In this document: positions 6,139 to 64,000 of the stretch, in pieces
Layout: every line of letters starts with the position of its first letter
Numbering within the stretch: the stretch's first letter is position 1
DNA from: Camelus dromedarius
Taxonomy: Eukaryota
NCBI RefSeq assembly: GCF_036321535.1
Contig: NC_087438.1
Coordinates: 98,704,001 to 98,768,000 of the forward strand
Direction of reading: 5' to 3'
DNA length: 64,000 nucleotides
Position numbers and translations under genes: made by a program
The notes under the pieces: model-generated
Databases searched by the model: none
The model's input: only the letters and a program-made list of their open reading frames with translations
Told to the model about the DNA's origin: nothing

Positions 6139-8565
<2,427 letters not shown>

Positions 8566-11049
8566 AGATTTTATTATCATGCAGAACTTTTAGAATGAGT
8601 GCTGTTTCTTTGTAAAAATGTATTCATTGTAATGCAAAATTACATTTTGGGTAACTTCATTTTACTTAAGAGTTTTGAGAAATTTCAATAATTTAAATCT
8701 ATTCTCTGCTCATTAACCGTGAAAAAACGAAGGGAGCTAGGATTTGCTTAGTCTTTCTTTCAAAATGCAACCTCAAATAATTTATTCAGATATACAGCAG
8801 TTTCTATTCAACTTAATTGCACACTTGGCTCAGTCATTCTCTGGGTGTTATGGACTCCAGAACCTCTCATCAAGACAATTTTTCCATGTTTGATATAGTA
8901 TTATTATAGAGGAAAATGGATGGTAGGAATAAAAAACATGCATTTTTTTATGTTTTCAGGTTTTTTAAAAAAATATAATCTTTACATTTCATTTTTCTGC
9001 CAAATATGTCAGAGAATTTTTCTGCTTTCAGGTATTTTTCTTCATAAGTATGTTGCTACTAGATGCTGTTACAGTAAGATAAGTTCTAATCTTGTTTGGA
9101 TTAAGATATATACTCAGCCCATACTTGTCTAGAAACTTCTTGGTACTACCCAAGAGAGGTAATCAATACTGAGATGCTTATTCTACTTTTCTTTACCTCT
9201 CCTGGCCATTTTTGATTGGTCCAGTGACAGACTCCTGATTAAAGTGGGAATGGGCACATTCTCCAAGCCCCTAAATTTGTAATTAAGGTATAGTTCATCT
9301 ATTTTTTTTTCTTGATTGCTTGTAACTAGGAAGTAAATGTTAAGCATAGGCTGAGGTAGCCATGTTTATACTTATGTAAGCTGGCATCACAGAATGGCAT
9401 CTAGAGAGGGAAGCAAAAAGGGAGTAAGGAAGGGAATGAAGGAGTAACAGTGAGAAGGAACAAGGGAGTGGAGGAATCCGAAGCCTAAAAAACAGTAGAC
9501 TTAAGACAGCTGCTTGGTGCTAGATCTGTCAGTTCTTGATTTCAGTTTTTCTAAGTCCCCCATGTCAAATTGTCCTTGAGTTATACAGTAACACTCTAGT
9601 TTCTTAATAATAGAACTCCTCTGTTTAACCTATCTTGGGGAGGGGTGCATTTCTGGAAACAAAAAGTGACAGAAAAGATACATACAACCTTGAGTACTCA
9701 ATTAGACTGTATAGTATCAAACCCAGGTCTTTTATTGCATGCATCTAATATTAACTTAATCAATTAATGGAATAAAAATGTGCAAGCTTAAAGATAACTA
9801 ATCTATACTAGAGAATTTTTCTACAAAATTTTGTAAATAATTTATGAGGTCTTTCGACGGAAAATTGTTACAAAAGGTTTTATAGAATATCTTGTTACCA
9901 AGTTTCTCTTCAATATTTTATGTGCCCCAGGATCAGTTTTTAAAAGTAACACTGAAATTGTTATTATTTGGATGTCCATACATTTTCTCAGGATCATCAT
10001 ACCCTCCTTAGCACCTCTTTCTTTTAAAAATTATTTAATGAGTTCAATATGGAATAAATATTTTATCATTTAATGTAAATTAAATAATCTGATTTATAGA
10101 TCATATAGGTTGATTCATTATTTCATTAATGGTAATAACTATAATTTGATTGACACATAGTCTACTAGAAAGCCTCATGAAAAACATTTCAAGCTCTCTG
10201 CCAAGTTGATGGGCTTAAAATTTTCTCCTTAAAAGAGAAAACAAGGAGAAAATTTATCTGAAAGATGGGAATAAAAAACTAATTTTGATCCATTTGCTTA
10301 CTGACATAGGAAACAGCTTCTATCATTAGTACTTAAGGCCACATTTTCTTGAACATCTAATTCTATAATAAAGAATTTAAATCCATGACCAAGATCTTTC
10401 CTTGAGGAAAATTATCAGATTTTCAATTTGACCAGCATGTTCTCACATTTTGAAAGCTTACTAAATCAAATTTATTGCATGGTGTAGAGCAAAACATTTT
10501 AAAATATAGTATCAATTTGAGTTATCTGTACCTTAATTAAATCAATACGCAACACAACTTTTACACTTGGCTCACATTGTTTTCCCAGTTAGCCAGGTAA
10601 TTGGAGTGCCAGAATGTATGACACTGTCCATTATTTAAACATTATTATTAAAATACTGTCCAAATTTTGGTGCAACTGGGGAGACCACAGGTCCTCCACT
10701 CCAAGATGTTTTTCCCATCCTTAGGAGAAAAAGAACTTCAGTTCCATGCTAAGGTGAATCTCAGGTTCAACATGTATGAATCTTAGTTTTAGGAATAACT
10801 GTAGAAGCTCTTTACAAATTGTTTGGATAATGGAACAAGTCAATGCAATATGCTCACAGATGTACAGAGATATTCCCCTTAGACAATATTTACAAACAGG
10901 TTATCCACAACCCCTTAAGCTGCCTGTTGAGTTTGTATAATAGACCAATTCTAGCTGGTCTATCACTTATGTTGATATGGTGAAACATAATGAATGAATC
11001 TCTTCATCTACTGTGCTAGCTATGAGTTGAGTTTATTGGTATTTATTCT

Positions 11050-11579: not shown

Positions 11580-14048
<2,469 letters not shown>

Positions 14049-16422: not shown

Positions 16423-18957
<2,535 letters not shown>

Positions 18958-40598: not shown

Positions 40599-40735
40599 TT
40601 TTTTGTTTGTTTGTTTTGGGGGGAGGGAACTAATTTGATTGATTGATTGATTTTTTAAGGGAGGTACTGGGGATTGAACCCAGGACCTCATGCATGCTAA
40701 GCATGAGCTCTACCACTTTGCGCTATACCCTCCCC
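40599..40735 (-). mobile_element. tRNA-derived SINE, camelid Vic-1-like
   Basis: The reverse complement reads ggggagggtatagcgcaaagtggtagagctcatgcttagcatgcatgaggtcctgggttcaatccccagtacctccc, then (aatc)n and an A-rich tail. Confidence 0.85.
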
Positions 40736-40930: not shown

Positions 40931-40947
40931 CACACCAGGCGGCGCTG
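40931..40947 (+). promoter_or_regulatory. Candidate orphan forward CTCF / CSE-like site
   Basis: cacaccaggcggcgctg closely matches the CTCF core CCASYAGRKGGCRSY and contains the CGCT box. No intact gene follows. Binding is untested. Confidence 0.5.
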
Positions 40948-45759: not shown

Positions 45760-46560
45760 GATTCCCATGACTGGTGCCAAGGAGATAGGGGAGGACTTTT
45801 GTGGGCAATATCTCCAAAAACCTAGATCAGGAACGCAGAGTGTGGAGAAGAGTTTTCCATTCTTCTAAAGGCAGAAGGGACCCTTTGCTCCCAATGCACA
45901 CCCAAAAAGCCATTTGTAAATCAATCAGCAAAGAAGTTAAATGGAAGGATGCCCTGATTAATGTCTGCTGAGAGTCCAGGTTGCTGAGGAGGACCCAGTG
46001 AAACTGATTTAGGCTGGTGCAGAAATTCTCACTATATAGACAGTTAATCTGGCTTCCCTGTAGCAGAAATAATACTCTTTCTGGGGACAATTTTTTCCCT
46101 TACAGAATGTGCAGGATTGTTAACAGATCTCAATTTTCTACAAAACTACTTACCCACCTGTGAAATTTTTCATCTCAAGGTGCAGACTAAAGCCAGCAAT
46201 GCCCAATGTTGTGAACTAGTTTTGAAAAAGCCATGATATCTGCTGCAACAAACAGAACATCAGAACAATGACCTCCACCAACCTTAAAGAGGTAGGGACA
46301 CCAGAAGAGTCTAGTCTGCCTTTTAAACATCACGGACATCATTCACAAGGGGCCTGTATTTAAGTGCTGGTATTAGGAGGGAGCTAAAAACACCATGGAT
46401 GGTGGAGTTCAAAAGGCAGGCCGCAGATTTGGATGATAATTCCAACACTAAAATAATTTGCTTTCTAAAAAGATTCTCAGAGAAGATGTCTCGACCATTC
46501 CATATGAACCTGGAGAGATCAGACACCAGAGAGTCACAGACTTTGAAAACAGGGATTTTC
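45760..46560 (+). pseudogene. Highly decayed clustered-protocadherin (gamma-A-like) variable-exon relic
   Basis: Colinear motifs across frameshifts: FVGNISKNL (45798), EDPVKLI*AGAEIL, GQFFPLQNVQD (46085), LQNYLPTCEIFHLKVQT...ELVLKKP (46138-46233), ITDIIHKGPVF, AADLDDNSN (46420), PGEIRHQRVTDFE (46509). These follow EC1-EC3 order. Confidence 0.75.
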
Positions 46561-48004
46561 AAAGCTCAGATTTAGGCATCAGAAATATGGATTTGATCAA
46601 TTTAAATCTTAGAAATAAATACCATCTGCATTCTGCTTTAATCCAGGCCTGCTTGAATGAAGCCCCACTAAGTAGCTGCTGACTGTTTATGTATGTAATA
46701 TATAACTTAAATGTATAAATAAAGTAAAGTAGAAAATTGTTTTCTTTTAAAGAAAAAATAAATGGAAGACCAGGTATTGCTCTGGAGCTTACCTGGCATA
46801 AGACTGAGCATCCTTTCCCACAAATGTCTGCCGCAGCCCCCATTTGTCAACATCTCATTACCCTGACCCTCTTGCCTCTGGCAACATGGCTAGAGTTACC
46901 ACAAAGGCATCACAAATAGCAAAAAGATGAAGGAATTAGAGATTCCATGTCAGTTTTACATTCTGCCAGCAATGATAGACACACTTGCTATGGAATATTA
47001 AGATTGGGAGCCAGCCTGTTTTCAGCTTTACAGGCTGCTTAAGAACACTTCTTAATGAGAGAAGCTCTACTGGTCTGGATCAGCAAGGAATGATGAGGCT
47101 TACTTTAATGATGACAAGAATGACCATGGGGTCAAAGAACAGGTGCTCATCACAGGTCTGTGGGGATCAGATGAACTGCGGTTTTTTGGTTTTGGTTTTT
47201 GTCAGTGCCTATATACATACATATAGCATAGTTTAATAAAATGGCTTTTCTTATGTTTGATTTATAAAGTCATATCCTATATGTAGTCATCAATAAAATT
47301 CACTGATGGCCAGTACCAAAGTTAGAGGGTTCCAACTCTGTAAAAAAAAAAAAAAATGACAAGGAGTTATGGACCCTGTGGTAAACTTCAGGATGGATCA
47401 GCCCTAACATTAATCACTGTGGACTGCAAGCAGTAAGTTCTGTCTAGTTCTGTCTGAGAGGAGAGGGTTTCATCCACTAGTAATGTCACTTGATCATCAC
47501 CAGCGAACAAAACATTCTCTTGGCTTTGGCACCCTCTGTTCCCTGGGTTTCTGACTGGTGAAGACAGGGAGGACAGTGAATGATCTAAAGTGGGTCAACA
47601 TCCCCTAAATGGGCCAACAGTACATCACAGAATCCAACCCGGGGCCAGGACCCAGAGACTGGAAGCTAAGAACTGTTGTGAGCTACATGGGTCTTCATCA
47701 AAGCATAGCACAGCCCCATCCCTCACTTCTTCCTCAGTCTAAACTTCAGCAGAGAGGAAGCTCTTTGGGAGAGGAGAGGAAGGAAACTTGGTACAATAAG
47801 GGCCAGGATACGTCCCAAAGGCTTAATGCTCTAGGCCACACTAAACTAAGAGTGTGGAATATGAGCCCACTTTGAAAATGAACAGCATAATTTTAAGAAT
47901 AGAGGATCCTGGAGAAATTCAGGATGCCTCATCTGAAACTTTAACTCAAGAATGTGGAAGCAACACCAGTATGCAGGTATATTCTCTTTAAAATCTAGAT
48001 GGGA

Positions 48005-48380
48005 AAAAAGATGAAATCTTGCCATTTGCAACATCACGGATGGACCTTGAGGGTATTATGGTAAGTGAAGTAAGTCAGATGGAGAAAGACAAATACCGTA
48101 TTATTTCACTCATCTGGAATATGAAAAACAAACAAAAACCAAAATAAATGAACAAACCCAACCCAAACAAAACAAGCATGTAGTTACAGAGAACAGAGTT
48201 GTGGCTATCAGAGGAGAGGGATGGGAAGAGGGCAAAGTGGATGAAGGGGCTCAACTCTATGGTGATGGATGAAAAATATATTTTTGGTGGTGAGCACATT
48301 ATAGGGTATACAGTAGAAAAATAATGTATAGATGAAACAATGTTACATCAATAAAAAATAAACACTGTAGATGCAAAAAA
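48005..48380 (+). mobile_element. L1 3'-end fragment (L1MA-type)
   Basis: gatgaaatcttgccatttgcaacatcacggatggaccttgagggtattatg...aagtcagatggagaaagacaaatac; flanked by TSD-like aaaatc(t/a)agatggg. Confidence 0.8.
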
Positions 48381-48936
48381 AATCAAGATGGGTATTTTGG
48401 TTTTCACACACACAAAAACTTTTTAAAAACTTTTAATTGGCTAGTATAGTGCACATGTTAAGCAGAGTTTTAAAGAGACCCTACATCTTGAATGGATTAA
48501 GCAATCATTTATAACCATCTTCATGAATCATAGTTAATTGTTTTCACGGGGACATGAGATTAAATATGGAACCAAACTGTGATTTACTCACAACACATAA
48601 TCAACCAAACTGCAGGCACATGTGCAGATTTATGCAAAAGTCCCGGTACAACTATATTTACCCTTTGAGATTAAGTACATAGTACCCACTCACTCTGATA
48701 TCCCACTAAACATAAGAGCAACTTTTCTATTTCAATACAATTATAGGCAGAAACTATATGACATAAAATAGAAGTGTTTCCATAAAGTTTAAGATTTAGA
48801 GTATAAGAAGAGAAGACAAAAACAAAATTTCCATGAAGTCAAAAATAATTCCGCATTGGTCCGGTGCTCCATGAAACCCTGAGATAAACTATAGTCCTCA
48901 AAGATGTGTACTTGGATCAGAGTTCACCAAGACACT

Positions 48937-49842
48937 TCAGTATGCTTCACAGTGGCTCATCATCATCTTCCTGCTGTATTCATAAGCCAAAAACAGTGAC
49001 CCATTGGCAGGGAACGCTCGAACCAAAGTAGCTTTCAGTCCAGAATATAAGGCTGCTACTCCTTCATTTTTCACAACACTTACAAGAGTTCTGATAAATC
49101 CTGCCTGTTTTCCAAACATGGAAAGAACCTGAATTCTGGATTTGATACAATCCACGGGGTATATGACAAGCCAAAGACAAATTCCAGCAATACCACCACT
49201 TAACATCAAGGGAACAGGGCCAAGTTCATCTTTGGATCCTCCTGAAGCAAAAAATGATCGGCTCAGTTCATACCCACCGAAGAAGAAGAAGTAGCCCGGT
49301 ACTTCTTGAAGTAGAGTGCTCGAAAGTCCACGGTAGAAGCCCAAGGGTCCATCCTTTCTAAGGATACTCTTCACGACGGACCAGACTGTATTATGGCTTT
49401 TTGCTATCCTCCCTGACATCTCCATCTCGTGCATGGTCTGCAGCCGGCACTTCACAAGCTCAGTGGGGCACAGGGCCAGCGCGGCAAACGCGGAGGCGAA
49501 GGAACCCGCGGCCGCAGTCTGCAGATCACTCAGCTTTGCCTGCTTGTCCAATCCAACCACTTTACTCACAAACTGCTGGCAGAAGCCGTAGCACATAAAG
49601 AGGACGGAGTTCTCTGCGACGTAGGCCATCAGCGCTGGGCCCGTCCCCTTGTAGAAGCCCCGCAAGCCCACTTGGGAGTACGTCTTCAAGCAGCAGTCGA
49701 TGAGGCCCTTGTACAGGCCAGGGAACGTCTGCATCTTCACTTTCATGGTGTCGAAGGGCTGCCCGGTCAGGACGCAGGCTGTGCCCCCGAGGGCCCCCGC
49801 GGTGAGGTCGATGGCGGCTTGGATGGCAGGATTGGACTCCAT
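48937..49842 (-). CDS. SLC25A2: Mitochondrial ornithine transporter 2 (ORNT2/ORC2), 301 aa, intronless
   Basis: Three carrier signature motifs (PFDTMK, PTELVK, PVDCIK). Residues E77, Q179, E180, W224 and R275 are present, and Q179 distinguishes ORC2 from ORC1 (R179). The intronless CDS and position between the beta and gamma clusters are established for SLC25A2. Confidence 0.97.
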
Positions 49843-50700
49843 GTTCGCCCACTGATCTGCTGGTCCCCGGGAAAGGCCACTCTCTGCAGCCTAACACGGG
49901 CGTCTTATGTCCCGACGCCCACTCTGGACTCTCTCCCCCGCGGGAGAAGCCGCTTAACCCCAGACTAGGCCGCCCTCCGCGCGCCCTGAAATAACCCCCT
50001 GCGGACCGCCTTGCGCGCGCCTTTCCACGCGCCCCGCGGCCCCCGCCCCGCCCCGCCCGCCGCCTGCCGGGCGCCGCCCGCCATCCCCGCGCCCCCGGCC
50101 GGGGCGCAGACTAGGTAAACATTTTTAATGGACTACAATCCAGCGATTGAAAGCTGTTCGATAAATTCTTGCGATTTCGGCGGGAACCGCTAGGCGCCGC
50201 TACTCACCGGCTTTCCTATTCGGCCTGCCCCTCCACCGCCCGCATTTCCTACTCGGTAAATCAAACTGGGCGGGGGCTGGGGGGAGGGGTGCTCCCGTTT
50301 GACCGTGACTGGGGTCAAAGGGTCAACCTCAGAAACAGGTTTTAAATAGGGAAAACAAACAAACTACTGGGGGGAGAGGGGAGCGGTTTACATGAGAATA
50401 CGTGGCTCCTTTGAATCAGAAAACCCTTAATCCTTTCCCGAGAGGAATGGCGGCTCAGCAAAGGTGCCGGCCCGCCGCGCCCCTCTGGGTCTCGCCCTTT
50501 GCTCGCCTAGCGACGCTGGCTGAGGCCCGAGGCCGGCAGATCCGCTACTCGGTGCCTACGGAGCTAGAGAAAGGCTGTTTCGTGGCAACGCGCCTAGGAT
50601 CTGAGCCTAGATCCTGCGAGCTGGTGGGACGCAGAGTCCCCATCATTTCCAGAGGTAGGACAAGGCCTTGTACCATCGGGTTGGAAAACGTATCTATATA
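49400..50700. promoter_or_regulatory. CpG island / SLC25A2 promoter with tandem GC boxes
   Basis: Dense CpG; (ccccg)3 Sp1-type boxes at 50041-50056 upstream of the SLC25A2 ATG. Confidence 0.8.
50186..50208 (+). promoter_or_regulatory. Gamma-type CSE-like / CTCF-like element
   Basis: accgctaggcgccgctactcacc contains the CGCT box and lies about 260 nt upstream of the relic ATG at 50447, similar to CSE spacing in the intact genes. Confidence 0.6.
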
Positions 50701-50820
50701 GAGCTAAGAAACTTGATAGAAGAGAGCTGTGTGGCTCCAGAGCTGTTCGCGCCGCTTCATGGTTCTTGTTGAGGAGCCATACAGCTTTATGCAGCAGCAA
50801 TTCTGGAAAGCAATGACCAT
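50447..50820 (+). pseudogene. Truncated PCDHGA-like relic (signal peptide plus EC1)
   Basis: MAAQ...[21 protein letters not shown]...IISRGRT (compare PCDHGA QIRYSVPEELEKGSFV...ISRGRT). After frameshifts come KKLDRRELCG (50712) and ILESNDH (to 50820). No recognisable EC2. Confidence 0.82.
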
Positions 50821-53759
50821 AGGCCTAGTAGGCAAGATGTGGTTTGGGGCATCATTGTGGGTACCGCTGTAGCCTACCTCCACCTTTTTCTCCCAGATCC
50901 TTATAATTCCAGCTTTGGAACGAATTTTCTTAAGGTTTACATTCTAAGCTCTAGGCGGTATTTTACCTTGGGGGTAAAAACAAAATGGGGAAGTTGTCAG
51001 GTGTGCTGAAATGATTCTTCCATTCAGGAAGCTTTCCTTGTCTGATTCTTTGGCTCCCAGTTAACATTTTAAAGTGTGGCACCCAAAAGCAGATTGTGCA
51101 TGGATAGTTTGTCAATAGGTAGACTTTAGTGTAGTGGTAGACAGTGACCAGGCCTTTGTTTAGAGAATACCCGAATGTCAGTATTTGGATTTCTTTTCTC
51201 TGGGCTCACATGGTTTCTTCAGAGAATAATCTTACAGTCTTGACTCTGTTTGTGTGTGTTTGGGGGTGATGTATGCCTTGGGTACTGATTTAATGAGACC
51301 AAAATAGGGTAAGAGGGGTGACATCCTGCAGTAAAGAAAACATATTTTCACATAACCCCCTTGTTTAATGTTATACATCCCAGCCTTCATCTGGACCTGC
51401 TTTCTCTGAGTTTGAGCCTTTGGTTCAATTTATCCAGAAAATAAACTTTCCATCTGTGGGATGGGTAAGTAAGAGTTACCTGGCTTCCTCGAGTGACATA
51501 GGGATCCTGCACATCCAGCTGTGAACACACTTTAATGAATCCTGTTTCCAGCCCCACTTCCGTCTTCCTTGGAAACTTTGCCTACAAAAATTGTCTCACA
51601 GTTTCTATATCAAGTGGGTGTGTCTCTCTCTCTCTTTCATATACCCCCTTACAGACATTTAGCATGTAACTTTCTGTGATTTCTCAATTATCATTTCTTC
51701 ATCTGCTTTGCCCTTCTGAAAACAGGTTGACATTTCTCATTCACTGTTGTCTCATTTCCTATTCTTTGTCCTTGGGGCTTACTATGTTATATTGGCAGGC
51801 TTTTTGATAGAGAAAAGAGATATGTGAGAACAATGCACCATTTTAAACTAGAAAAAAAATGTTAAATTCTTCGTATCATATTTGAGGGATTTTTTAAAAT
51901 GTTTTGGTATCACCCTCAGGAAAGTCAATAAGGGAAAATCATATTTTAATACTTACTATGGAGGTCCTATCAAGTTTTCTAGAGGAGCATTCAGTTTTAA
52001 CTACTGTCAATTAATTACATATGGTTCATTGTTAATTTTTTAAAAACACACACAAGAGATACTTTTGTATTAAGTTCATATATGTATGTTTTGGAGAAAC
52101 CAAACTAATAATCAAGGCCAGGTAGGGCATTAATAGGGAAATGGTCTTTACCTTCATTGAATTGTCGGACATAGTTGCACAAATAGTGACAGAAAGAGAT
52201 TGAGTTCCGTAAAGTGTATTTAAACAGCTGGACTTGGAGAGAACACACTTCAGCAAATACTGTAACACTGCCCAAGACACTGGGCAGTCATAAGCATCTG
52301 AAACCATTTTTTCCCGATTCTAACTAACCAAAATTATGCTTCTGTTTTGAATTTAAGCACATGTCCTCCCAAGCATACGTGGAAAATAATGGCAAAGAAA
52401 CTTTCAACTTTTCAGTGAAGACCACCACCCTTGACTAGATGTGAACACCCACATCACATGTTCCCTAGCAATTAGATTGAGTGGCCAGGTAGGATTACCA
52501 GAGAAAGTGAGGTTTGAGCTGAGGCCTGAATAACAAAAAGCTAGCCATGAGAGGATATAGAGACTGTTCAGGAAAAGGGAACTGTAAATGCTAAATAAAG
52601 CTCTGTAGTGAGAAAGAACTGGGCATTTGAAGTACAGAAAGGCCAGTATAGCTGATGTTTGGTGGGCAGTCTTCCTAGTCTGTTTTCACACAGAATTCTT
52701 ACTGGATAATAAGATAAGCAAGAGGTCAAGACACAGTCCTTCAAAGACATGAATTGTCACTATTTGTCCAAATTTCTCATCTCAAATAAACATTTGCTCT
52801 CCAAATTCAAAATGTCAGGCTTTATGACATTTCGAACTGAACACAAAGATCCCACTTACCTAATCTATGGATATAATGCAAAATGGAAGCCAGACTGATG
52901 TGCTTATTGCAGCATTCTGTGTAATAGCAAATTTAAAATGGAACAATGTAAGTGACCAGCAATAGGGGAGTGGATAAAATCAAGGGAAAAAAAAATCTGT
53001 ATCACGAAAAATAGCAGGAAGTCTCTATGTGCTGATATGGAAGGATACTCGTAATAAATTTTTGAGTGATAAAAGTTTTAGAATAGTATCTATAACAATA
53101 TATATTTTTTGCTTTACAAGACTATATATATGTATACAATTAATTGTACACCAAGTAAAGGCCTGGACCAATACATCTCAAAAAGTTACCCTGGAAAGTT
53201 GGTGTGAAAGGGACAACTTTACTTTGTATTTTTTGCAAAATTTTTGCATTACTTAAAATTTTTCAGTTACTCTTCTAATTCCTGTATGTTAAAACACTAA
53301 TTAAAGAAAATTCAGCTGTTCATCAACTCAAAAATACTGAAAACTGCAGCCCAACTGAACATCATACTCATCAGGCAAGGGAGCTGGGAAAAGTCTTTTT
53401 TGCTAACTCTGGATTTACCTAAAGAGAAATGAATCCCAATCTTCTTCAGTTAACCTTTTCTCTTTTGAAGTTTATTGTAACAGATATTTACTCTTCATTA
53501 TGGAGGTTTTAATATTAGTGCAAAGCCAAGCCATAAATAAATCAAAAGCAATAAAGCTACAGTAGTAAACCAACTCAATTTACTTATTCTGCAGATGAAT
53601 TTGAAGCAAACTCTGCTTCTGTCATTTATAAACTCTGATTTAGAATAATTAATCTGAAATCAACCACATGTAAAACACAGTTATTTATACACTTTTCTAC
53701 CACTTTGATCACTCTTTAATTCAAGTAATTATTTAACCCCTATTATGTAAAGACTCTAG

Positions 53760-54999: not shown

Positions 55000-56049
55000 T
55001 CACTTCTCTAGGAGTGATTCTAGCTCTTCTTGCAGAGAGCTGAGCTGCTCCTTTTCTCGGTCTTCCTTTTGTTTCAGTTCATCTAGCACAGCCTGAAATC
55101 TGTTCTTGAGAGCCAGGTTTTCCACTTTCATGATGAGATCCTCCTGTCGCTTTGCCCTGTCCTGGGTCTCCTGGAGCTTGCCTTTCATGTTATCAATCTG
55201 TTTCTGGATTCCCATAACCAGCTGATTGGTTCCCTCGTTTTCTTGGTGCTGTTCATCTGATTCATTTAGCTTGTCCTGTAGCTGTCTTTCCAGATCTTCC
55301 TCAGTGTCGATGATGTTTATATCTTCTTCATCTTGATGCTGCGTCTCATCTTCATCTTCGCTGCTGCTGCTGAGGTCATTGAATATCTCCCGAAGCTCAT
55401 CATGTTCTAATGAGTCATGGCCCTGCCTGTGGCCAGACATTCCTGGAGAAGCGATATCAAGGCCCTGATTTTCTGTTTCTTTTGTTTCATCTTCAGCAAT
55501 TATTTCCCAACGAGTACTGACAGCTTCAGCATCTGTGCTCAGCAACCGCTTCACTTCTTTTTCCACATCTGGAGATTCAATATACTTCTTCTTTGCTGTC
55601 TTCCGGAACCTTCTCTTTCGGACATTTTTTAGAGGCAGAGTAATTCCATGGTTCCATACAAATTTTTTCTCTTTGTCCTTATCCTTTTTCTTGCTTGCTT
55701 TGGGATCAGCAGTAGCAACTGGTTCCTCCACAGGAGGATAGAGATCACCATCAACTGTAGAGACAAGCATCTGACAGATATCAGCTGTCTTGTAAAAGGT
55801 TTTCTTATCAATGGTTTTCAAACTTTCCATAACACACGGCAGATCCACCAGTTTTGAGGCCAGTGGGACCCGATCCACTCTGACGATTCCATGACGCCCA
55901 TCAGGGTGTAATTCAATTGTCAGTCTGTCCTTCAGGTTGACATGGCCAGACTGTACTGCTCGCCTCACAGTAGAGGCATACTCTGGAGGAAGGCGTAAGA
56001 TAAACTGGCTCTCCAGTTCATGAGGAGCATCATCTTTGCTCTTACTCAT
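55000..56049 (-). CDS. TAF7: TFIID subunit 7 (TAFII55), 349 aa, intronless CDS
   Basis: MSKSKDDAPHELESQFILRLPPEYASTVRRAV...NHGITLPLKNVRKRRFRK...LQEELESLLEK, with length equal to human TAF7. The track's 56094 start is a GTG, so the true ATG is 56049. Confidence 0.98.
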   Translation of the reverse strand: MSKSKDDAPHELESQFILRLPPEYASTVRRAVQSGHVNLKDRLTIELHPDGRHGIVRVDRVPLASKLVDLPCVMESLKTIDKKTFYKTADICQMLVSTVDGDLYPPVEEPVATADPKASKKKDKDKEKKFVWNHGITLPLKNVRKRRFRKTAKKKYIESPDVEKEVKRLLSTDAEAVSTRWEIIAEDETKETENQGLDIASPGMSGHRQGHDSLEHDELREIFNDLSSSSEDEDETQHQDEEDINIIDTEEDLERQLQDKLNESDEQHQENEGTNQLVMGIQKQIDNMKGKLQETQDRAKRQEDLIMKVENLALKNRFQAVLDELKQKEDREKEQLSSLQEELESLLEK

Positions 56050-56307: not shown

Positions 56308-56323
56308 CCTCTAGATGCCGCTG
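56308..56323 (+). promoter_or_regulatory. Gamma-type CSE-like / CTCF-like element inside the TAF7 leader region
   Basis: cctctagatgccgctg has one mismatch to the CTCF core, and the same GCCGCT variant occurs in the elements at 50186 and 62725. Confidence 0.5.
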
Positions 56324-56551
56324 CAGGACAACGCAGAGAGCTAGCCAGCAGGAAAGCAAATGGCGGCTGCTACGGAATGATTTTCGGCACACAAAGCTAA
56401 GGCCCAGCAGACACTCCCAATCCACAACTCTCCCGGAACAAAGATATTCAAAAAGCGGGGCGTAGTGAGCTCTCTTCGCCTCGGGTACTTACAATCCAGT
56501 GACGATTATAAATCCAGTTTCTCCGGACAGGAGCGAGCAGAAGCCACTCCG

Positions 56552-56637
56552 GAGCAAGGCGGCCCGTGGCCGAGCGTCTCCTTCTTGATTCCTTTGTTCT
56601 TTCCGGCTCGCGGCAATCAGGAGCGATTCGCTACTAA
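56552..56637 (+). pseudogene. Possible PCDHGB-like signal-peptide relic
   Basis: GPWPSVSFLIPLFFPARGNQ, then IRY* after a frameshift (compare PCDHGB GPRQVLFPLLLPLFYPTLCEPIRY). The match is short, so the call is tentative. Confidence 0.4.
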
Positions 56638-58799
56638 TTATTAGTGAAACAGCTCAGGACAGGCAACACGAAATCTCGCTGATATCCGCAGCTTCGAGAG
56701 CCAGATTCTGCAGCTCCTCAGCTGCGCAGCTCGGCAGCTCAGCAGACCTCCGTCCGGAGCTGCAGACCCAGCGGAGAATAAAACGCTACGCAACCGGAGG
56801 CGGCTATGAGTGACAGCACAACTCGGGCGGAAGTGCGCACTGCCCCGGCGCGCGCAGGCGCAACGCACAATTACGCTATCCAGCGTGACTTGTCTCGCGA
56901 GAAGTTGGCTTTACGCGATGAAGATGATACTCTCGTGAAGAACGTTGGTTTGGAAATATTTAGAGAAAACAATACCAAGAAAGACATAGATTCTCCGGCC
57001 CGCCCCCGCTAAGCCAGAACTTTTAGCGGATCGCCATGAAGCCGGATAGCTCCTTGGCTTCCGGGTGATTGCCGGAGATAGGGAGTCCGTGAGGAAAGCG
57101 TCCTTTTCCTGGAAACATCTGGATGCTCCCCGGGCTGTATCCAATTTGGAGCCGAACTAAGAATTTATAACTAACCATGCTGTGGATTTTAAAACACCCA
57201 AATCAGTGGAGTGAGGACTTGCTGTCCACTATGTAGTTCTAAGTCTGTGTGTGCTGGTTATGGAAATGTTCGTAGGAGGCCTATGACTAGGGGTCTGTTT
57301 CTGTTTTGAAGGCCCTCAGAAGGAACAAGGATGATTCCTCTTTTTAATGTATTCGACGTAGATGTAAATGGTAACAGAGAAGTAAGTGTTCTTCTGGAGG
57401 CCCATGTTCGTTTAGGACAGTTATCTGAAAGACGAATGGTCTGATTAGAGTATAATTCAAATATTACTCCCTGTCAGTCATTTGCCAGTAATTTTTAAAT
57501 TAGTTTGGAATTTTTAAAATTCCACCTCTACTGTTTTGAGAACTGTTTTCTGCTTGCCTCTTGTATGGGTGGTCAGTTATTCATCAACATGTATTTATAG
57601 CATTTTAGCCTAACTATGTAACAGTTTCCACTTCTTCCTATTCATTTCCATTTATTTTTTAATAGGATCAGTTTGGTAGAGCATCAAGGTCATTTAAAAT
57701 TTAATTTCTGTCCTCTAAAATATTAACACCTGCATCTAAGTTTAAGAGAACTCACTAAAAATGTGATTAACATCTACAAAATTAACTGTATTTCTTTATG
57801 TACTTGTCTCCCTTGCTCTAGGTTGGAAGCTCCATGATAATCAGGAATGTAATATTTTGTTCATCTGGTCCTGGTGCCTAGTATCAAAACATGGGAGATA
57901 AAAAAAATAGTTGCTAATTGAATGAAAGAATTGATCCATCCAGAAAAAATATATATAAATATAGCCCAAATTCTTTAATAATTTGTGAGAGAAAATATAT
58001 TCCAAGTCACATTAAAATGAGATACAGCAACTTTATATACATTTCCTCTCCAGTCAGGGACAGTGCCAATTATCATGAGGGGAGAAGTTTGCAAAAAGTG
58101 TGTGTGTGAATGTGTTGCCTTTGCTTTTAGTAGACTGTGAGACTATGTATGATGGGGGGGATTTAAATGGCTTGGCACCAGTCTGATTTTTTTTTTATGT
58201 TAAGTCTGAGGAAAAATTAAGCTCTTCCACATAATTGTACTTTAGTTCTTTGTTCTGTAATGTGTTGAAGAATGTTAGCTGATGTATTTCCAGGATTCTC
58301 TCTTTCCTCTTTTTGAAGATGAAATTTTCCCCCTGTACTTATCCCTTCATTGTACCAGATTTTACGCATTTCATAGATATGAGTTTAACATGCTAGCCTC
58401 TGCATAATCCTTTTTTGTGATTATAAAATTTGAGGCCCAGCTTATACAAGAAGGTTATCCATATATTGCTTTGCATTTTAATTGCCTATGAGTTTTATGA
58501 TGTTCAAATATCTTTGTCACAGAAAATAACCTGAGATAAATTCTATGCAATTCTGATTTGCCAAAATTATGATATATTTTAGTTAGTAAGCCTTTAAGTA
58601 GAAGATTGTCAGGAATAATTAAAAGGATCAACTGTAGTTTCCCCTGAAGTATCTACCTCCTTCAATCCTGAAACATATTTTCTCCTTTTGAGTTTGACAC
58701 GTTTTCTGAAGGCTATTTTTTTGCAGGGTAATTACATTGATCCTAAAGCTAAGAGCTCTGCCAGGTCACCATTACCTTAATGTCTGTTGATACATGCAC

Positions 58800-59700: not shown

Positions 59701-59999
59701 TAGGCATGATAGAATCATGGCCTGGCACAAATTGTTTTAACTTCCTGATTTTAGAGAATGAACATTTATTTATACTTGTTATTCTTTCAGCTTTTCCCTC
59801 ATCTTGTAAACTTCGAGAGTCTATGGTCATAAGAAATCTGACAGAAGTAACTGGGGAACTTCCTTTCTTGGCCGTGGTAAGTTCAGAGAGTGTCTCTCCC
59901 TAACCAGAATCTGTCTTTCAACTTGATTGGTCTAACTAAGACTATACACCTATCCCTGGCTCAATAGTAGTCACCAGGGGAATACCCTAAGCCTATGAT

Positions 60000-62724: not shown

Positions 62725-62746
62725 CCTCTGGGTGCCGCTGTCGGCC
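62725..62746 (+). promoter_or_regulatory. Gamma-B-type CSE / CTCF element
   Basis: cctctgggtgccgctgtcggcc with a CGCT box, in a CpG-enriched patch about 315 nt upstream of the relic signal peptide. Confidence 0.7.
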
Positions 62747-62989
62747 AGTCCGTGGCTAGAGTGAAACAAAGGAATCCACTGGCGTTTCTGACGCAGCGAT
62801 CCCTGATCCCCGCAGACTTTTGAGAAACCCATCAGGAAGGGACTCTGCACACCGTCTCTCCCGGAATCTTTTCCAAATATATAGGTCTGGCAACTCAGGG
62901 TGAGCCGCTGCCTTGTCTTTCCAGTGCACTTTGGTATCCCGGCAGCAACCGCAGCGAGATGTATTCAGACCTACGAAGCAGCATCAAGA

Positions 62990-64000
62990 AGACACAGAAA
63001 GAGGTCCTCCCACTGGGAAGGGCGCGAGAGTGCAGGAAGCACTGTTTTCCTTCCTGCTGTCAGTGTTCACTCGAGTGAACTGCGAAGTAGATGCGCTGCA
63101 AGATTCCCGATTCTGGAAGAGGTAACCAAGGACTTAAAAGTGGGCAATTTTGCTAAAGATCTACATCTCGGTGACCAGAACCATGGGTGAGTGCTGAGAA
63201 GCCTGTCTTTACCGCCAGCAAAGAGAGCAGGGAGGAACAAGACAATGACAGGATAGATCTAGCTGGTAGGCCAAAGGAAGTCCCTAGACTCCCTGAACCT
63301 GAAAACTTTACTGGAAATCCTATAAATGCCTTTCATATAAATGTATTTTTATCCTGGATATAAATAACATAAGGCTTTTAGTGCGGCCATTTTGTTTTGA
63401 AAATTCTGGGGAAACATCTTAATAGGAGCAAAGTTTACTCCTAAACTGCAGTAGATATGGATGGTGCAAATAATTCTCTACAAATTTATGAGATTAGTTT
63501 CAATTAACCATTTCCCCCACTGCCAGAAGTAGAAGAGAGCACAAGGGCAGTAAATATCCTGGTTATTAGAGAAATTGGGACTGGAGGAGCAGAGCTGCCA
63601 CCACTTAGTGGTGGGAAGGAAGCAGAACAGCTCAGAGAATGAAACGGATCTTGGATGCCAGAGCCAACCCTCCCATACTGAACCACAAAGAGTACAGCAG
63701 AGTCTGCCTTCTGGAGGACGTGCCTTCCACCTCCTTGTCTACATTCTTCAGGTGATCCCTTCTGACGTAGATGATACCCCTAAGGTAGAGTTCTCCTGTA
63801 CTTCCCACACAGTCCCACAGGATATACAGAATATATCCTATAATAGCAAGCACCATCTTTGATTTTGAAGAGTGACAGTTACATCGTAGCCTCTTCTACG
63901 GTGTAGAAGAGGACAGGAGACAGTTAAGGGCCCAATCCTGGTTGAAATGGAGGTTGGGAACCATAATGCAGTGCAGGTGACTTTCAACTGAGTGTCTAGT
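62990..64000 (+). pseudogene. Decayed PCDHGB-like variable exon (runs off the window end)
   Basis: LFSFLLSVF (63042), PILEEVTKDLKVGNFAKDL (to 63163), NPINAFHINV, DMDGANNSLQIYEIS, EQSCHHLV, LDARANPP (63651), ILQVIPSDVDD and FDFEE* (63858). These are colinear with EC1-EC3, with many stops and frameshifts. Confidence 0.8.

Follow-up and report, generated by a model that had tools for sequence, protein, structure and literature searches.

SLC25A2 beside a dead protocadherin exon: an old head-to-head junction and a putative composite promoter

A retrocopy that lands near an existing promoter has a known route to expression, and retrogenes can recruit a neighbouring CpG-island promoter divergently, which is the bidirectional-promoter route. 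Whether SLC25A2, an intronless gene lying among protocadherin (Pcdh) genes, came by its promoter in this way is the question raised by a 64,000-nucleotide stretch of the dromedary genome (Camelus dromedarius, NCBI RefSeq assembly GCF_036321535.1, contig NC_087438.1, positions 98,704,001 to 98,768,000 of the forward strand), which we call the window and which represents the spacer region between the Pcdh-beta and Pcdh-gamma clusters. A sequence-only reading of this stretch had proposed that an SLC25A15 retrocopy landed upstream of a gamma exon, used the promoter of that exon in reverse, and outlived it while selection on SLC25A2 preserved the CpG island. Our results indicate that an old head-to-head arrangement of this kind exists and may have helped the retrogene to gain a promoter, and they assign different fates to the different pieces of the host promoter.

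The coding sequence (CDS) of SLC25A2 (ORNT2) occupies 48,937–49,842 on the minus strand as an intronless, intact open reading frame (ORF) of 301 aa, which contains three Pfam Mito_carr domains (E 1e-62) and encodes a protein 87–91% identical to named mammalian ornithine transporters, with 79–91% identity across named SLC25A2 orthologues. When compared by blastn with the dolphin SLC25A15 locus (L024), the CDS matched five separate parental exons. Seven exon blocks that lie scattered across some 30 kb of the dolphin locus form one contiguous stretch in the camel, with the junction of exon 1 and exon 2 included; SLC25A2 is therefore a processed copy of SLC25A15, as the sequence-only reading had held.

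The homology to the parental transcript extends well upstream of the start codon. The first 71 nt of the 5' untranslated region (UTR), at 49,843–49,913 on the minus strand, derive from the non-coding start of parental exon 2: window positions 49,913–49,792 matched L024 9,930–10,051 at 77% identity (E 3e-21 by blastn, E 3e-9 by nhmmer), and an AG acceptor stands in the dolphin locus directly before 9,930, where exon 2 starts. The adjoining 5'UTR stretch at 49,914–49,980, also on the minus strand, derives from parental exon 1. A five-species nhmmer profile matched L024 6,933–7,007 on the same strand (E 1.2e-5) and ended at the exon junction, the pairwise alignment covered 49,980–49,916, and the 2.9-kb parental intron 1 is missing from SLC25A2. 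Since both 5'UTR exons are represented, the 5' edge of the retrocopy can be placed at 49,980 or further out; past that position the comparison with L024 gave no significant parental match.

On the opposite strand, 604 bp from the SLC25A2 ATG, lies the ATG of a gamma-A-like variable-exon relic (50,447–51,006, plus strand), which has the same orientation as the three beta genes in the window and retains a signal peptide, the first extracellular cadherin repeat (EC1) and roughly the first half of EC2. An 84-codon frame at 50,447–50,698 reads MAAQ...ISRGRT, and a phmmer search of the PDB with this piece returned five matches, all to Pcdh gamma-A proteins (A9, A8, A1 and two mouse gamma-A chains, E 8e-4 to 2e-3), with alignments that begin at QIRYSVP. 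The Pfam Cadherin_2 match of the piece (E 0.006) falls under the curated cut-off, as expected of a decayed piece. The frame is closed by a stop at 50,699 and is followed by a second frame at about 50,694–50,813 (...LDRRELCG...) and, after a second frame shift, by a third at 50,773–51,006 (...SNDHRPS...). The frameshifted gamma-A-like start opposite SLC25A2 that had been described earlier is thus borne out, with its ATG at 50,447 rather than 50,448. The relic does not end after EC1, as had been thought: the third piece aligns with the linker between EC1 and EC2 and with about 55 residues of EC2, reaching residues 165–178 or so of protocadherins, or about position 51,000. The matches obtained with tblastn and with a Pcdh profile are colinear (50,534–50,590; 50,694–50,768; 50,800–50,991), and past about 50,990–51,000 neither method recognised anything protocadherin-like. 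What stands at 50,447 is not a full open exon with six EC repeats and a transmembrane segment; because it is broken into three frames with stops, and is recognisable only to mid-EC2, we regard it as a relic and not a gene. A homologue search with the 84-aa piece gave no matches, and beta proteins used as probes detect the relics of the window weakly.

The promoters of living Pcdh variable exons combine a gene-specific element, the specific sequence element (SSE), with a conserved sequence element (CSE) that contains a CTCF site and lies about 200 bp before the ATG (PMC3333863, PMC7811963, PMC4978886), and the two elements are jointly required for promoter activity (PMC3333863). A gamma-type CSE remnant, GGAACCGCTAGGCGCCGCT, lies at 50,183–50,201 on the plus strand, with its CGCT box at 50,198–50,201, 246 nt upstream of the relic ATG. 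The motif TCTRGRYGCCGCT, allowing at most one mismatch, occurs three times in the window, each time on the plus strand, where 0.18 matches were expected, and none of 100 shuffled sequences reached three. The other two occurrences, at 56,310 and 62,727, share ACC.CT.G..GCCGCT with the element beside SLC25A2, and each stands about 220–275 nt upstream of a gamma-like EC1 remnant on the same strand. The element at 50,183–50,201 is identical to each of these at 14 of 19 positions, a comparison made among relics of the window. Because of the excess of motif matches, and of the same strand and spacing at the other relics, the CSE likeness is judged to go beyond chance, which agrees with the CSE-like element that had been claimed at 50,186–50,208. 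A slightly longer form of the motif, allowing two mismatches, was found in the 20-kb orthologous loci of seven other mammals almost only at the orthologous places and on the Pcdh-sense strand, the sole exception being a two-mismatch match in the lemur (L035:17,361). The three beta promoters of the window carry CATGGTGGCGCTG 185–252 nt before their ATGs. A whole-library search with beta EC1–5 returned giant cadherins and fused non-mammalian models and no living PCDHGA promoter, and no clear CGCT element was seen in one of these, a compact non-mammalian cluster (L015).

Taken with the retrocopy edge at or beyond 49,980, the position of the CGCT box puts the insertion point roughly 100–220 bp, and at most about 220 bp, upstream of the box, with the retrocopy head-to-head with the exon and antisense to the cluster. 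The proposal that SLC25A2 landed upstream of a gamma exon therefore holds.

The junction is ancient. Reading outwards from the gene, the camel has the retrocopy 5'UTR, a GC-rich tract, an AT-rich block, the CSE, a leader and the gamma-A-like EC1, and the same order is found in a second camelid, horse, otter, Rousettus, Pteropus, a further species represented by assembled contigs (L025), hare and mouse lemur. Because this order recurs in both Laurasiatheria and Euarchontoglires, the junction predates the split between them and is ancestral to Boreoeutheria. Such an age is consistent with the published finding that the two non-Pcdh genes, Slc25a2 and Taf7, joined the cluster within the mammalian lineage (PMC2764143).

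To see which parts of the junction have been kept, we scored four-way invariance among camel, horse, otter and Rousettus in 40-nt windows (mean 0.40). The most conserved non-coding stretch was the 5'UTR derived from exon 1, with a peak of 0.75–0.78 at 49,923–50,002. Next to it is a GC-box tract at 49,981–50,116 (84% GC, CpG observed/expected ratio, o/e, of 1.16), with GGGGCGGGG repeats on the SLC25A2 sense strand. The tract opens with a conserved motif, TGAAATAACCCCC, at 49,987–49,999, and is otherwise poorly conserved (0.23–0.38 invariant), differing in length and sequence between species and having expanded its repeats in the second camelid. GC boxes also mark the edge of parental exon 1, whereas none precede the other Pcdh CSEs of the window. 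A second peak, of 0.68–0.70, covers 50,123–50,182 and corresponds to an AT-rich block (50,117–50,175, plus strand) that lies directly upstream of the CSE, in the position of the SSE of a Pcdh promoter. A 26-mer within it, TTGAAAGCTGTTCGATAAATTCTTGC (50,147–50,172), is matched with zero to three mismatches in seven lineages, among them the second camelid, horse, otter, both bats and lemur; the block is recognisable in the hare (E 4e-6), is without a match in the parental locus, and is constrained in eight of nine species, the hedgehog having lost both block and CSE. The host-derived DNA that adjoins the CSE on its upstream side is thus constrained. In the otter (L017, about 9,500–9,700), a SINE-like insertion of about 170 nt separates the GC tract from the block, which is still conserved. 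The former 5' leader of the dead exon (50,202–50,446, plus strand), delimited by cross-species alignment, shows near-neutral conservation: invariance over the leader and the coding part of the relic ranges from 0.03 to 0.6, with a small leader peak at 50,383–50,422.

The CSE itself has fared differently from the block beside it. Its CGCT box is intact in camelids, horse and otter; in Rousettus it is partly kept and the core around it has diverged. The box is deleted in Pteropus, reads TGCT in L025 and CGAT in the lemur, is unrecognisable in the hare and is gone in the hedgehog. The camel element fails the CTCF consensus CCASYAGRKGGCRSY at two or fewer mismatches, which the corresponding element beside TAF7 passes, and it resembles the general CTCF consensus less closely than do the beta CSEs of the window. 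The CSE on the SLC25A2 side is decaying, and its CTCF-type box is not among the parts that selection keeps.

CpG content shows which side of the junction has been constant. The CpG o/e is 0.96 over 49,843–50,560 and 0.79 over the signal peptide and EC1 of the relic, compared with 0.09 for another relic at 45,760–47,100, so the earlier remark that CpGs are preserved here, unlike at the relic near 45.8 kb, was accurate. Across species, the 250 nt immediately preceding the SLC25A2 ATG have a GC content of 0.56–0.74 and a CpG o/e of 0.79–1.10 in all nine, and the o/e of the relic side varies from 0.93 in the camel to 0.0–0.3 in the hedgehog. An Rfam scan of the island returned no RNA family.

A copy of SLC25A15 mRNA thus inserted antisense to the cluster, close upstream of the CSE of a gamma-A-type exon, and we propose that the host exon later died through frameshifts, stops and the loss of everything past mid-EC2, leaving SLC25A2 as the survivor. 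There is about an even chance, in our judgement, that SLC25A2 is transcribed from a composite CpG-island promoter, whose constant core would be the CpG-rich 5'UTR of the retrocopy together with the GC-box tract at its 5' edge, assisted by a host-derived element of about 60 nt in the SSE position. We infer both the action of the constrained block on SLC25A2 transcription and the position of the start site. The promoter capture and the selective preservation of the island that had been proposed thus survive in part: the 60-nt block at 50,117–50,175 is constrained, and the CSE, by its decay, and the rest of the relic side do not share in this.

Other observations weigh against promoter capture: the CGCT box has been lost in five of ten lineages, and CpG richness is shared by all nine species only in the 250 nt nearest the retrocopy. 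In the hedgehog, unrelated AT-rich DNA takes over at about 230 nt upstream of the ATG, without any detectable relic, yet the 301-aa ORF there is intact. Since this ORF has been kept where the SSE-position block and the relic are missing, the host element is dispensable in at least one lineage, which counts against a composite promoter too. The constraint on 50,117–50,175 could also have a cause unrelated to SLC25A2.

Among the alternatives, the one that survives best is that SLC25A2 carried its promoter with it or formed one de novo. The retrocopy would have brought along the CpG-rich exon 1 of its parent, perhaps with a portion of the parental core promoter, and would be driven by the GC boxes at its edge, the Pcdh remnant being a bystander. 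The exon-1-derived 5'UTR is present and is the non-coding stretch most conserved among the four species, the 250 nt next to the ATG are the sole CpG-rich part that all nine species share, the hedgehog has kept its ORF with that part alone, and GC boxes occur at the parental exon-1 edge but not before the other Pcdh CSEs of the window. This account leaves the strong constraint on the block in eight of nine species unexplained, however, and nothing past 49,980 shows significant parental homology. We regard it as a serious, though less probable, rival, and hold the same opinion of its corollary that the conserved block at the Pcdh remnant serves something else.

Promoter capture in the strict sense, in which SLC25A2 uses the relic CSE promoter divergently, selection on the gene maintains the island, and CTCF still binds there or Pcdh enhancers still act on it, would draw on the short head-to-head distance between retrocopy edge and CGCT box, on a camel CpG island that spans both units, and on the constraint of the block adjoining the CSE. 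Against it stand the loss of the CGCT box in Pteropus, hare, lemur, L025 and hedgehog while the TAF7-side CSE has been kept, and the variable CpG content of the relic side. In addition, constitutive methylation and repressive chromatin are reported for the human SLC25A2 island in kidney, brain and tumours, where that of TAF7 is unmethylated (PMC2776977); CpG methylation in the CGCT box blocks CTCF binding (PMC7811963); and expression of mouse Slc25a2 is preferentially in testis and not neuronal (PMC3391283). Because the island is methylated in human somatic tissues and a methylated CGCT box is not bound by CTCF, a continued response to CTCF or Pcdh enhancers, which had been suggested for this island, is unlikely, and so is strict capture as a whole. 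Since the CGCT box is not kept by selection, we do not expect SLC25A2 to be subject to the stochastic, CTCF- or enhancer-driven choice that characterises Pcdh genes. Such control would be the exciting part, and the evidence points against it.

TAF7 (CDS 55,000–56,049, minus strand) offers a comparison within the same window. Like SLC25A2, it lies on the antisense strand and has an intronless CDS, and a gamma-type CSE precedes its ATG, here at a distance of about 260 nt, with a relic beyond. This element, CTCTAGATGCCGCT, is at 56,309–56,322 on the plus strand, opposite to that of TAF7, and is followed by a gamma-like start remnant at about 56,540–57,010, beyond which lies the TAF7 CpG island. 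Unlike the SLC25A2-side CSE, it is conserved across orders, being identical at 14 of 14 positions in camelids, both bats, hedgehog and lemur (the lemur with one A/G change at a degenerate position) and at 13 of 14 in the otter; it lies inside the TAF7 5' region, the island of which is unmethylated in human tissues (PMC2776977). It passes the CTCF consensus at two mismatches and looks like a maintained, putative CTCF site within the TAF7 5' region. The remaining gamma-type CSE of the window, TCTGGGTGCCGCT, occurs at 62,727–62,739 (plus strand) and is kept in camelids and bats. It is followed, upstream of PCDHGA1, by an EC1/EC2 relic, RFPILEEVTKDLKVGNFAKDLHL..., at 62,900–63,740 (plus strand), with profile matches at 63,098–63,175, 63,445–63,504 and 63,624–63,737. 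Three gamma-type promoter remnants are thus now marked in the beta–gamma spacer, and if a CTCF site works at the cluster boundary, the perfectly conserved remnant beside TAF7 is a better candidate for it than that of SLC25A2. It is conceivable that SLC25A2 and TAF7 both became genes by landing antisense and just upstream of gamma-type Pcdh promoters, and that 50,117–50,175 survives from a Pcdh promoter and now serves as an orientation-independent germ-line promoter element. We consider this conjecture distinctly unlikely; a stronger version would have SLC25A2 still chosen stochastically or allele-specifically in some neurons under the gamma enhancers.

The transcription data bear mainly on a further possibility. 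Camel RNA-seq runs labelled as reproductive-system contained 82–90% of the sampled words of 49,300–51,000, and seven camel RNA-run contigs, all colinear with the genome, included the whole CDS, with upstream ends at 50,020, 50,076, 50,569, 50,703, 50,776, 51,744 and 51,857. Eight contigs from L025 end at camel-equivalent positions 50,314–50,472. We rejected these contig ends as start sites, as they fall at the 84% GC tract, at a G-run and at an L1 fragment, and the contigs are strandless. A further point against a composite promoter lies in the control stretch at 51,950–53,650, which was covered at 0.73–0.91 by camel RNA runs, several of them the same. As this intergenic control is equally covered, the coverage over the relic is not specific, which was a further reason for rejecting the contig ends as starts, and it suggests TAF7 read-through, long UTRs (for example, a 3'UTR directed towards SLC25A2) or nascent RNA over 51,950–53,650. 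An exonic antisense promoter in the relic exon or leader, or read-through from TAF7, with transcripts crossing the CSE in antisense, would suit the five of seven camel contigs that extend to 50,569–51,857, the L025 contig ends, the RNA over the control stretch and the location of Pcdh-alpha antisense promoters inside coding exons (bioRxiv 10.1101/360206), but it is the least probable of the readings, given that strandless contigs end at a G-run and a repeat, that such promoters are described for alpha, with an exonic CTCF site, and not for gamma (PMC7811963), and that the relic exon is nowhere conserved above background.

The antisense activity of Pcdh-alpha promoters, which had been cited as a precedent for a promoter used in reverse, is not one. 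Antisense transcription across a Pcdh promoter is known at this locus from the Pcdh-alpha antisense long noncoding RNAs (bioRxiv 10.1101/360206), but the promoters of these RNAs are exonic and converge on the sense promoter, and do not represent a CSE promoter run backwards, whereas SLC25A2 is placed on the upstream side of the CSE and points away from it.

The arrangement can be set beside other known systems. With retrogenes on divergent promoters, SLC25A2 has in common that it is an intronless copy of a multi-exon parent, that its 5' end lies within about 200 bp of a pre-existing promoter on the opposite strand, that one CpG island covers both units, and that its expression is testis-biased; in the camel, the 5' ends of the two units are less than 1 kb apart in one CpG island. 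It differs from them in that the promoter's donor has ceased to be a gene and has a decaying control box, that part of the island arrived with the retrocopy, and that dependence on the donor element is putative. With living Pcdh promoters it has in common a CGCT box on the sense strand of the cluster, 246 nt before a gamma-A-like ATG, with a conserved block upstream; here, however, the exon has died, half of the lineages examined have lost the box, and CTCF binding is putative. None of the ingredients is new in kind: Pcdh exon relics, retrogenes that use a neighbouring CpG-island promoter, and a cluster that includes SLC25A2 and TAF7 are all known. The locus provides a dated, sequence-level example of a retrocopy that came to lie no further than a nucleosome's width from a promoter already in place and that survived while the host exon died, and it indicates which pieces were kept afterwards, namely the block in the SSE position and not the CTCF box. 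Our literature search, which did not extend to the key comparative study of Wu et al. 2001, found no paper that ties the SLC25A2 promoter region to a Pcdh relic.

At its other end, SLC25A2 has a 3'UTR at 47,902–48,936 (minus strand) that derives from the parental SLC25A15 3'UTR and is broken by the 3'-end fragment of an L1 element. By blastn, window positions 49,063–48,397 matched L024 36,597–37,267 (76%), and 48,002–47,902 matched L024 37,273–37,375 (80%), so that homology to the parental locus continues to the edge of the compared stretch, and in a copy this old neither a poly(A) remnant nor target-site duplications would be expected to persist; the sequence between the two matches shows similarity to dispersed repeats. 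The L1 fragment, a type assigned from our reading of the sequence, is inserted at about 48,003–48,396, and assembled contigs of two species break within it.

The rest of the window holds three Pcdh-beta genes on the plus strand, with ATGs at 6,163, 11,673 and 16,555. PCDHGA1 starts beyond 66,049, outside the window, and was not reached within TAF7 plus 10 kb in the camel or in bats. In several camelid assemblies, gene models of 932–949 aa for the first gamma gene start at about 59,824–59,877 on the plus strand; this segment holds only a tiny ORF (MVIRNLTEVTGELPFLAV) followed by GTAAGT, is without Pcdh similarity, and is probably a spurious first exon. The 3' halves of the beta genes, from EC5 to the transmembrane and cytoplasmic part (7,300–8,560; 12,800–14,040; 17,650–18,950), encode virtually identical protein sequences, which points to gene conversion, and each contains a 157-base run of N at the same relative position. 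A beta-type CGCT/CTCF-like element, ACACCAGGCGGCGCT, lies at 40,932–40,946 on the plus strand with no open Pcdh exon downstream, and about 200 nt from it, at 40,659–40,732 on the minus strand, is an Rfam tRNA match of 44.8 bits, possibly a SINE or a tRNA gene.

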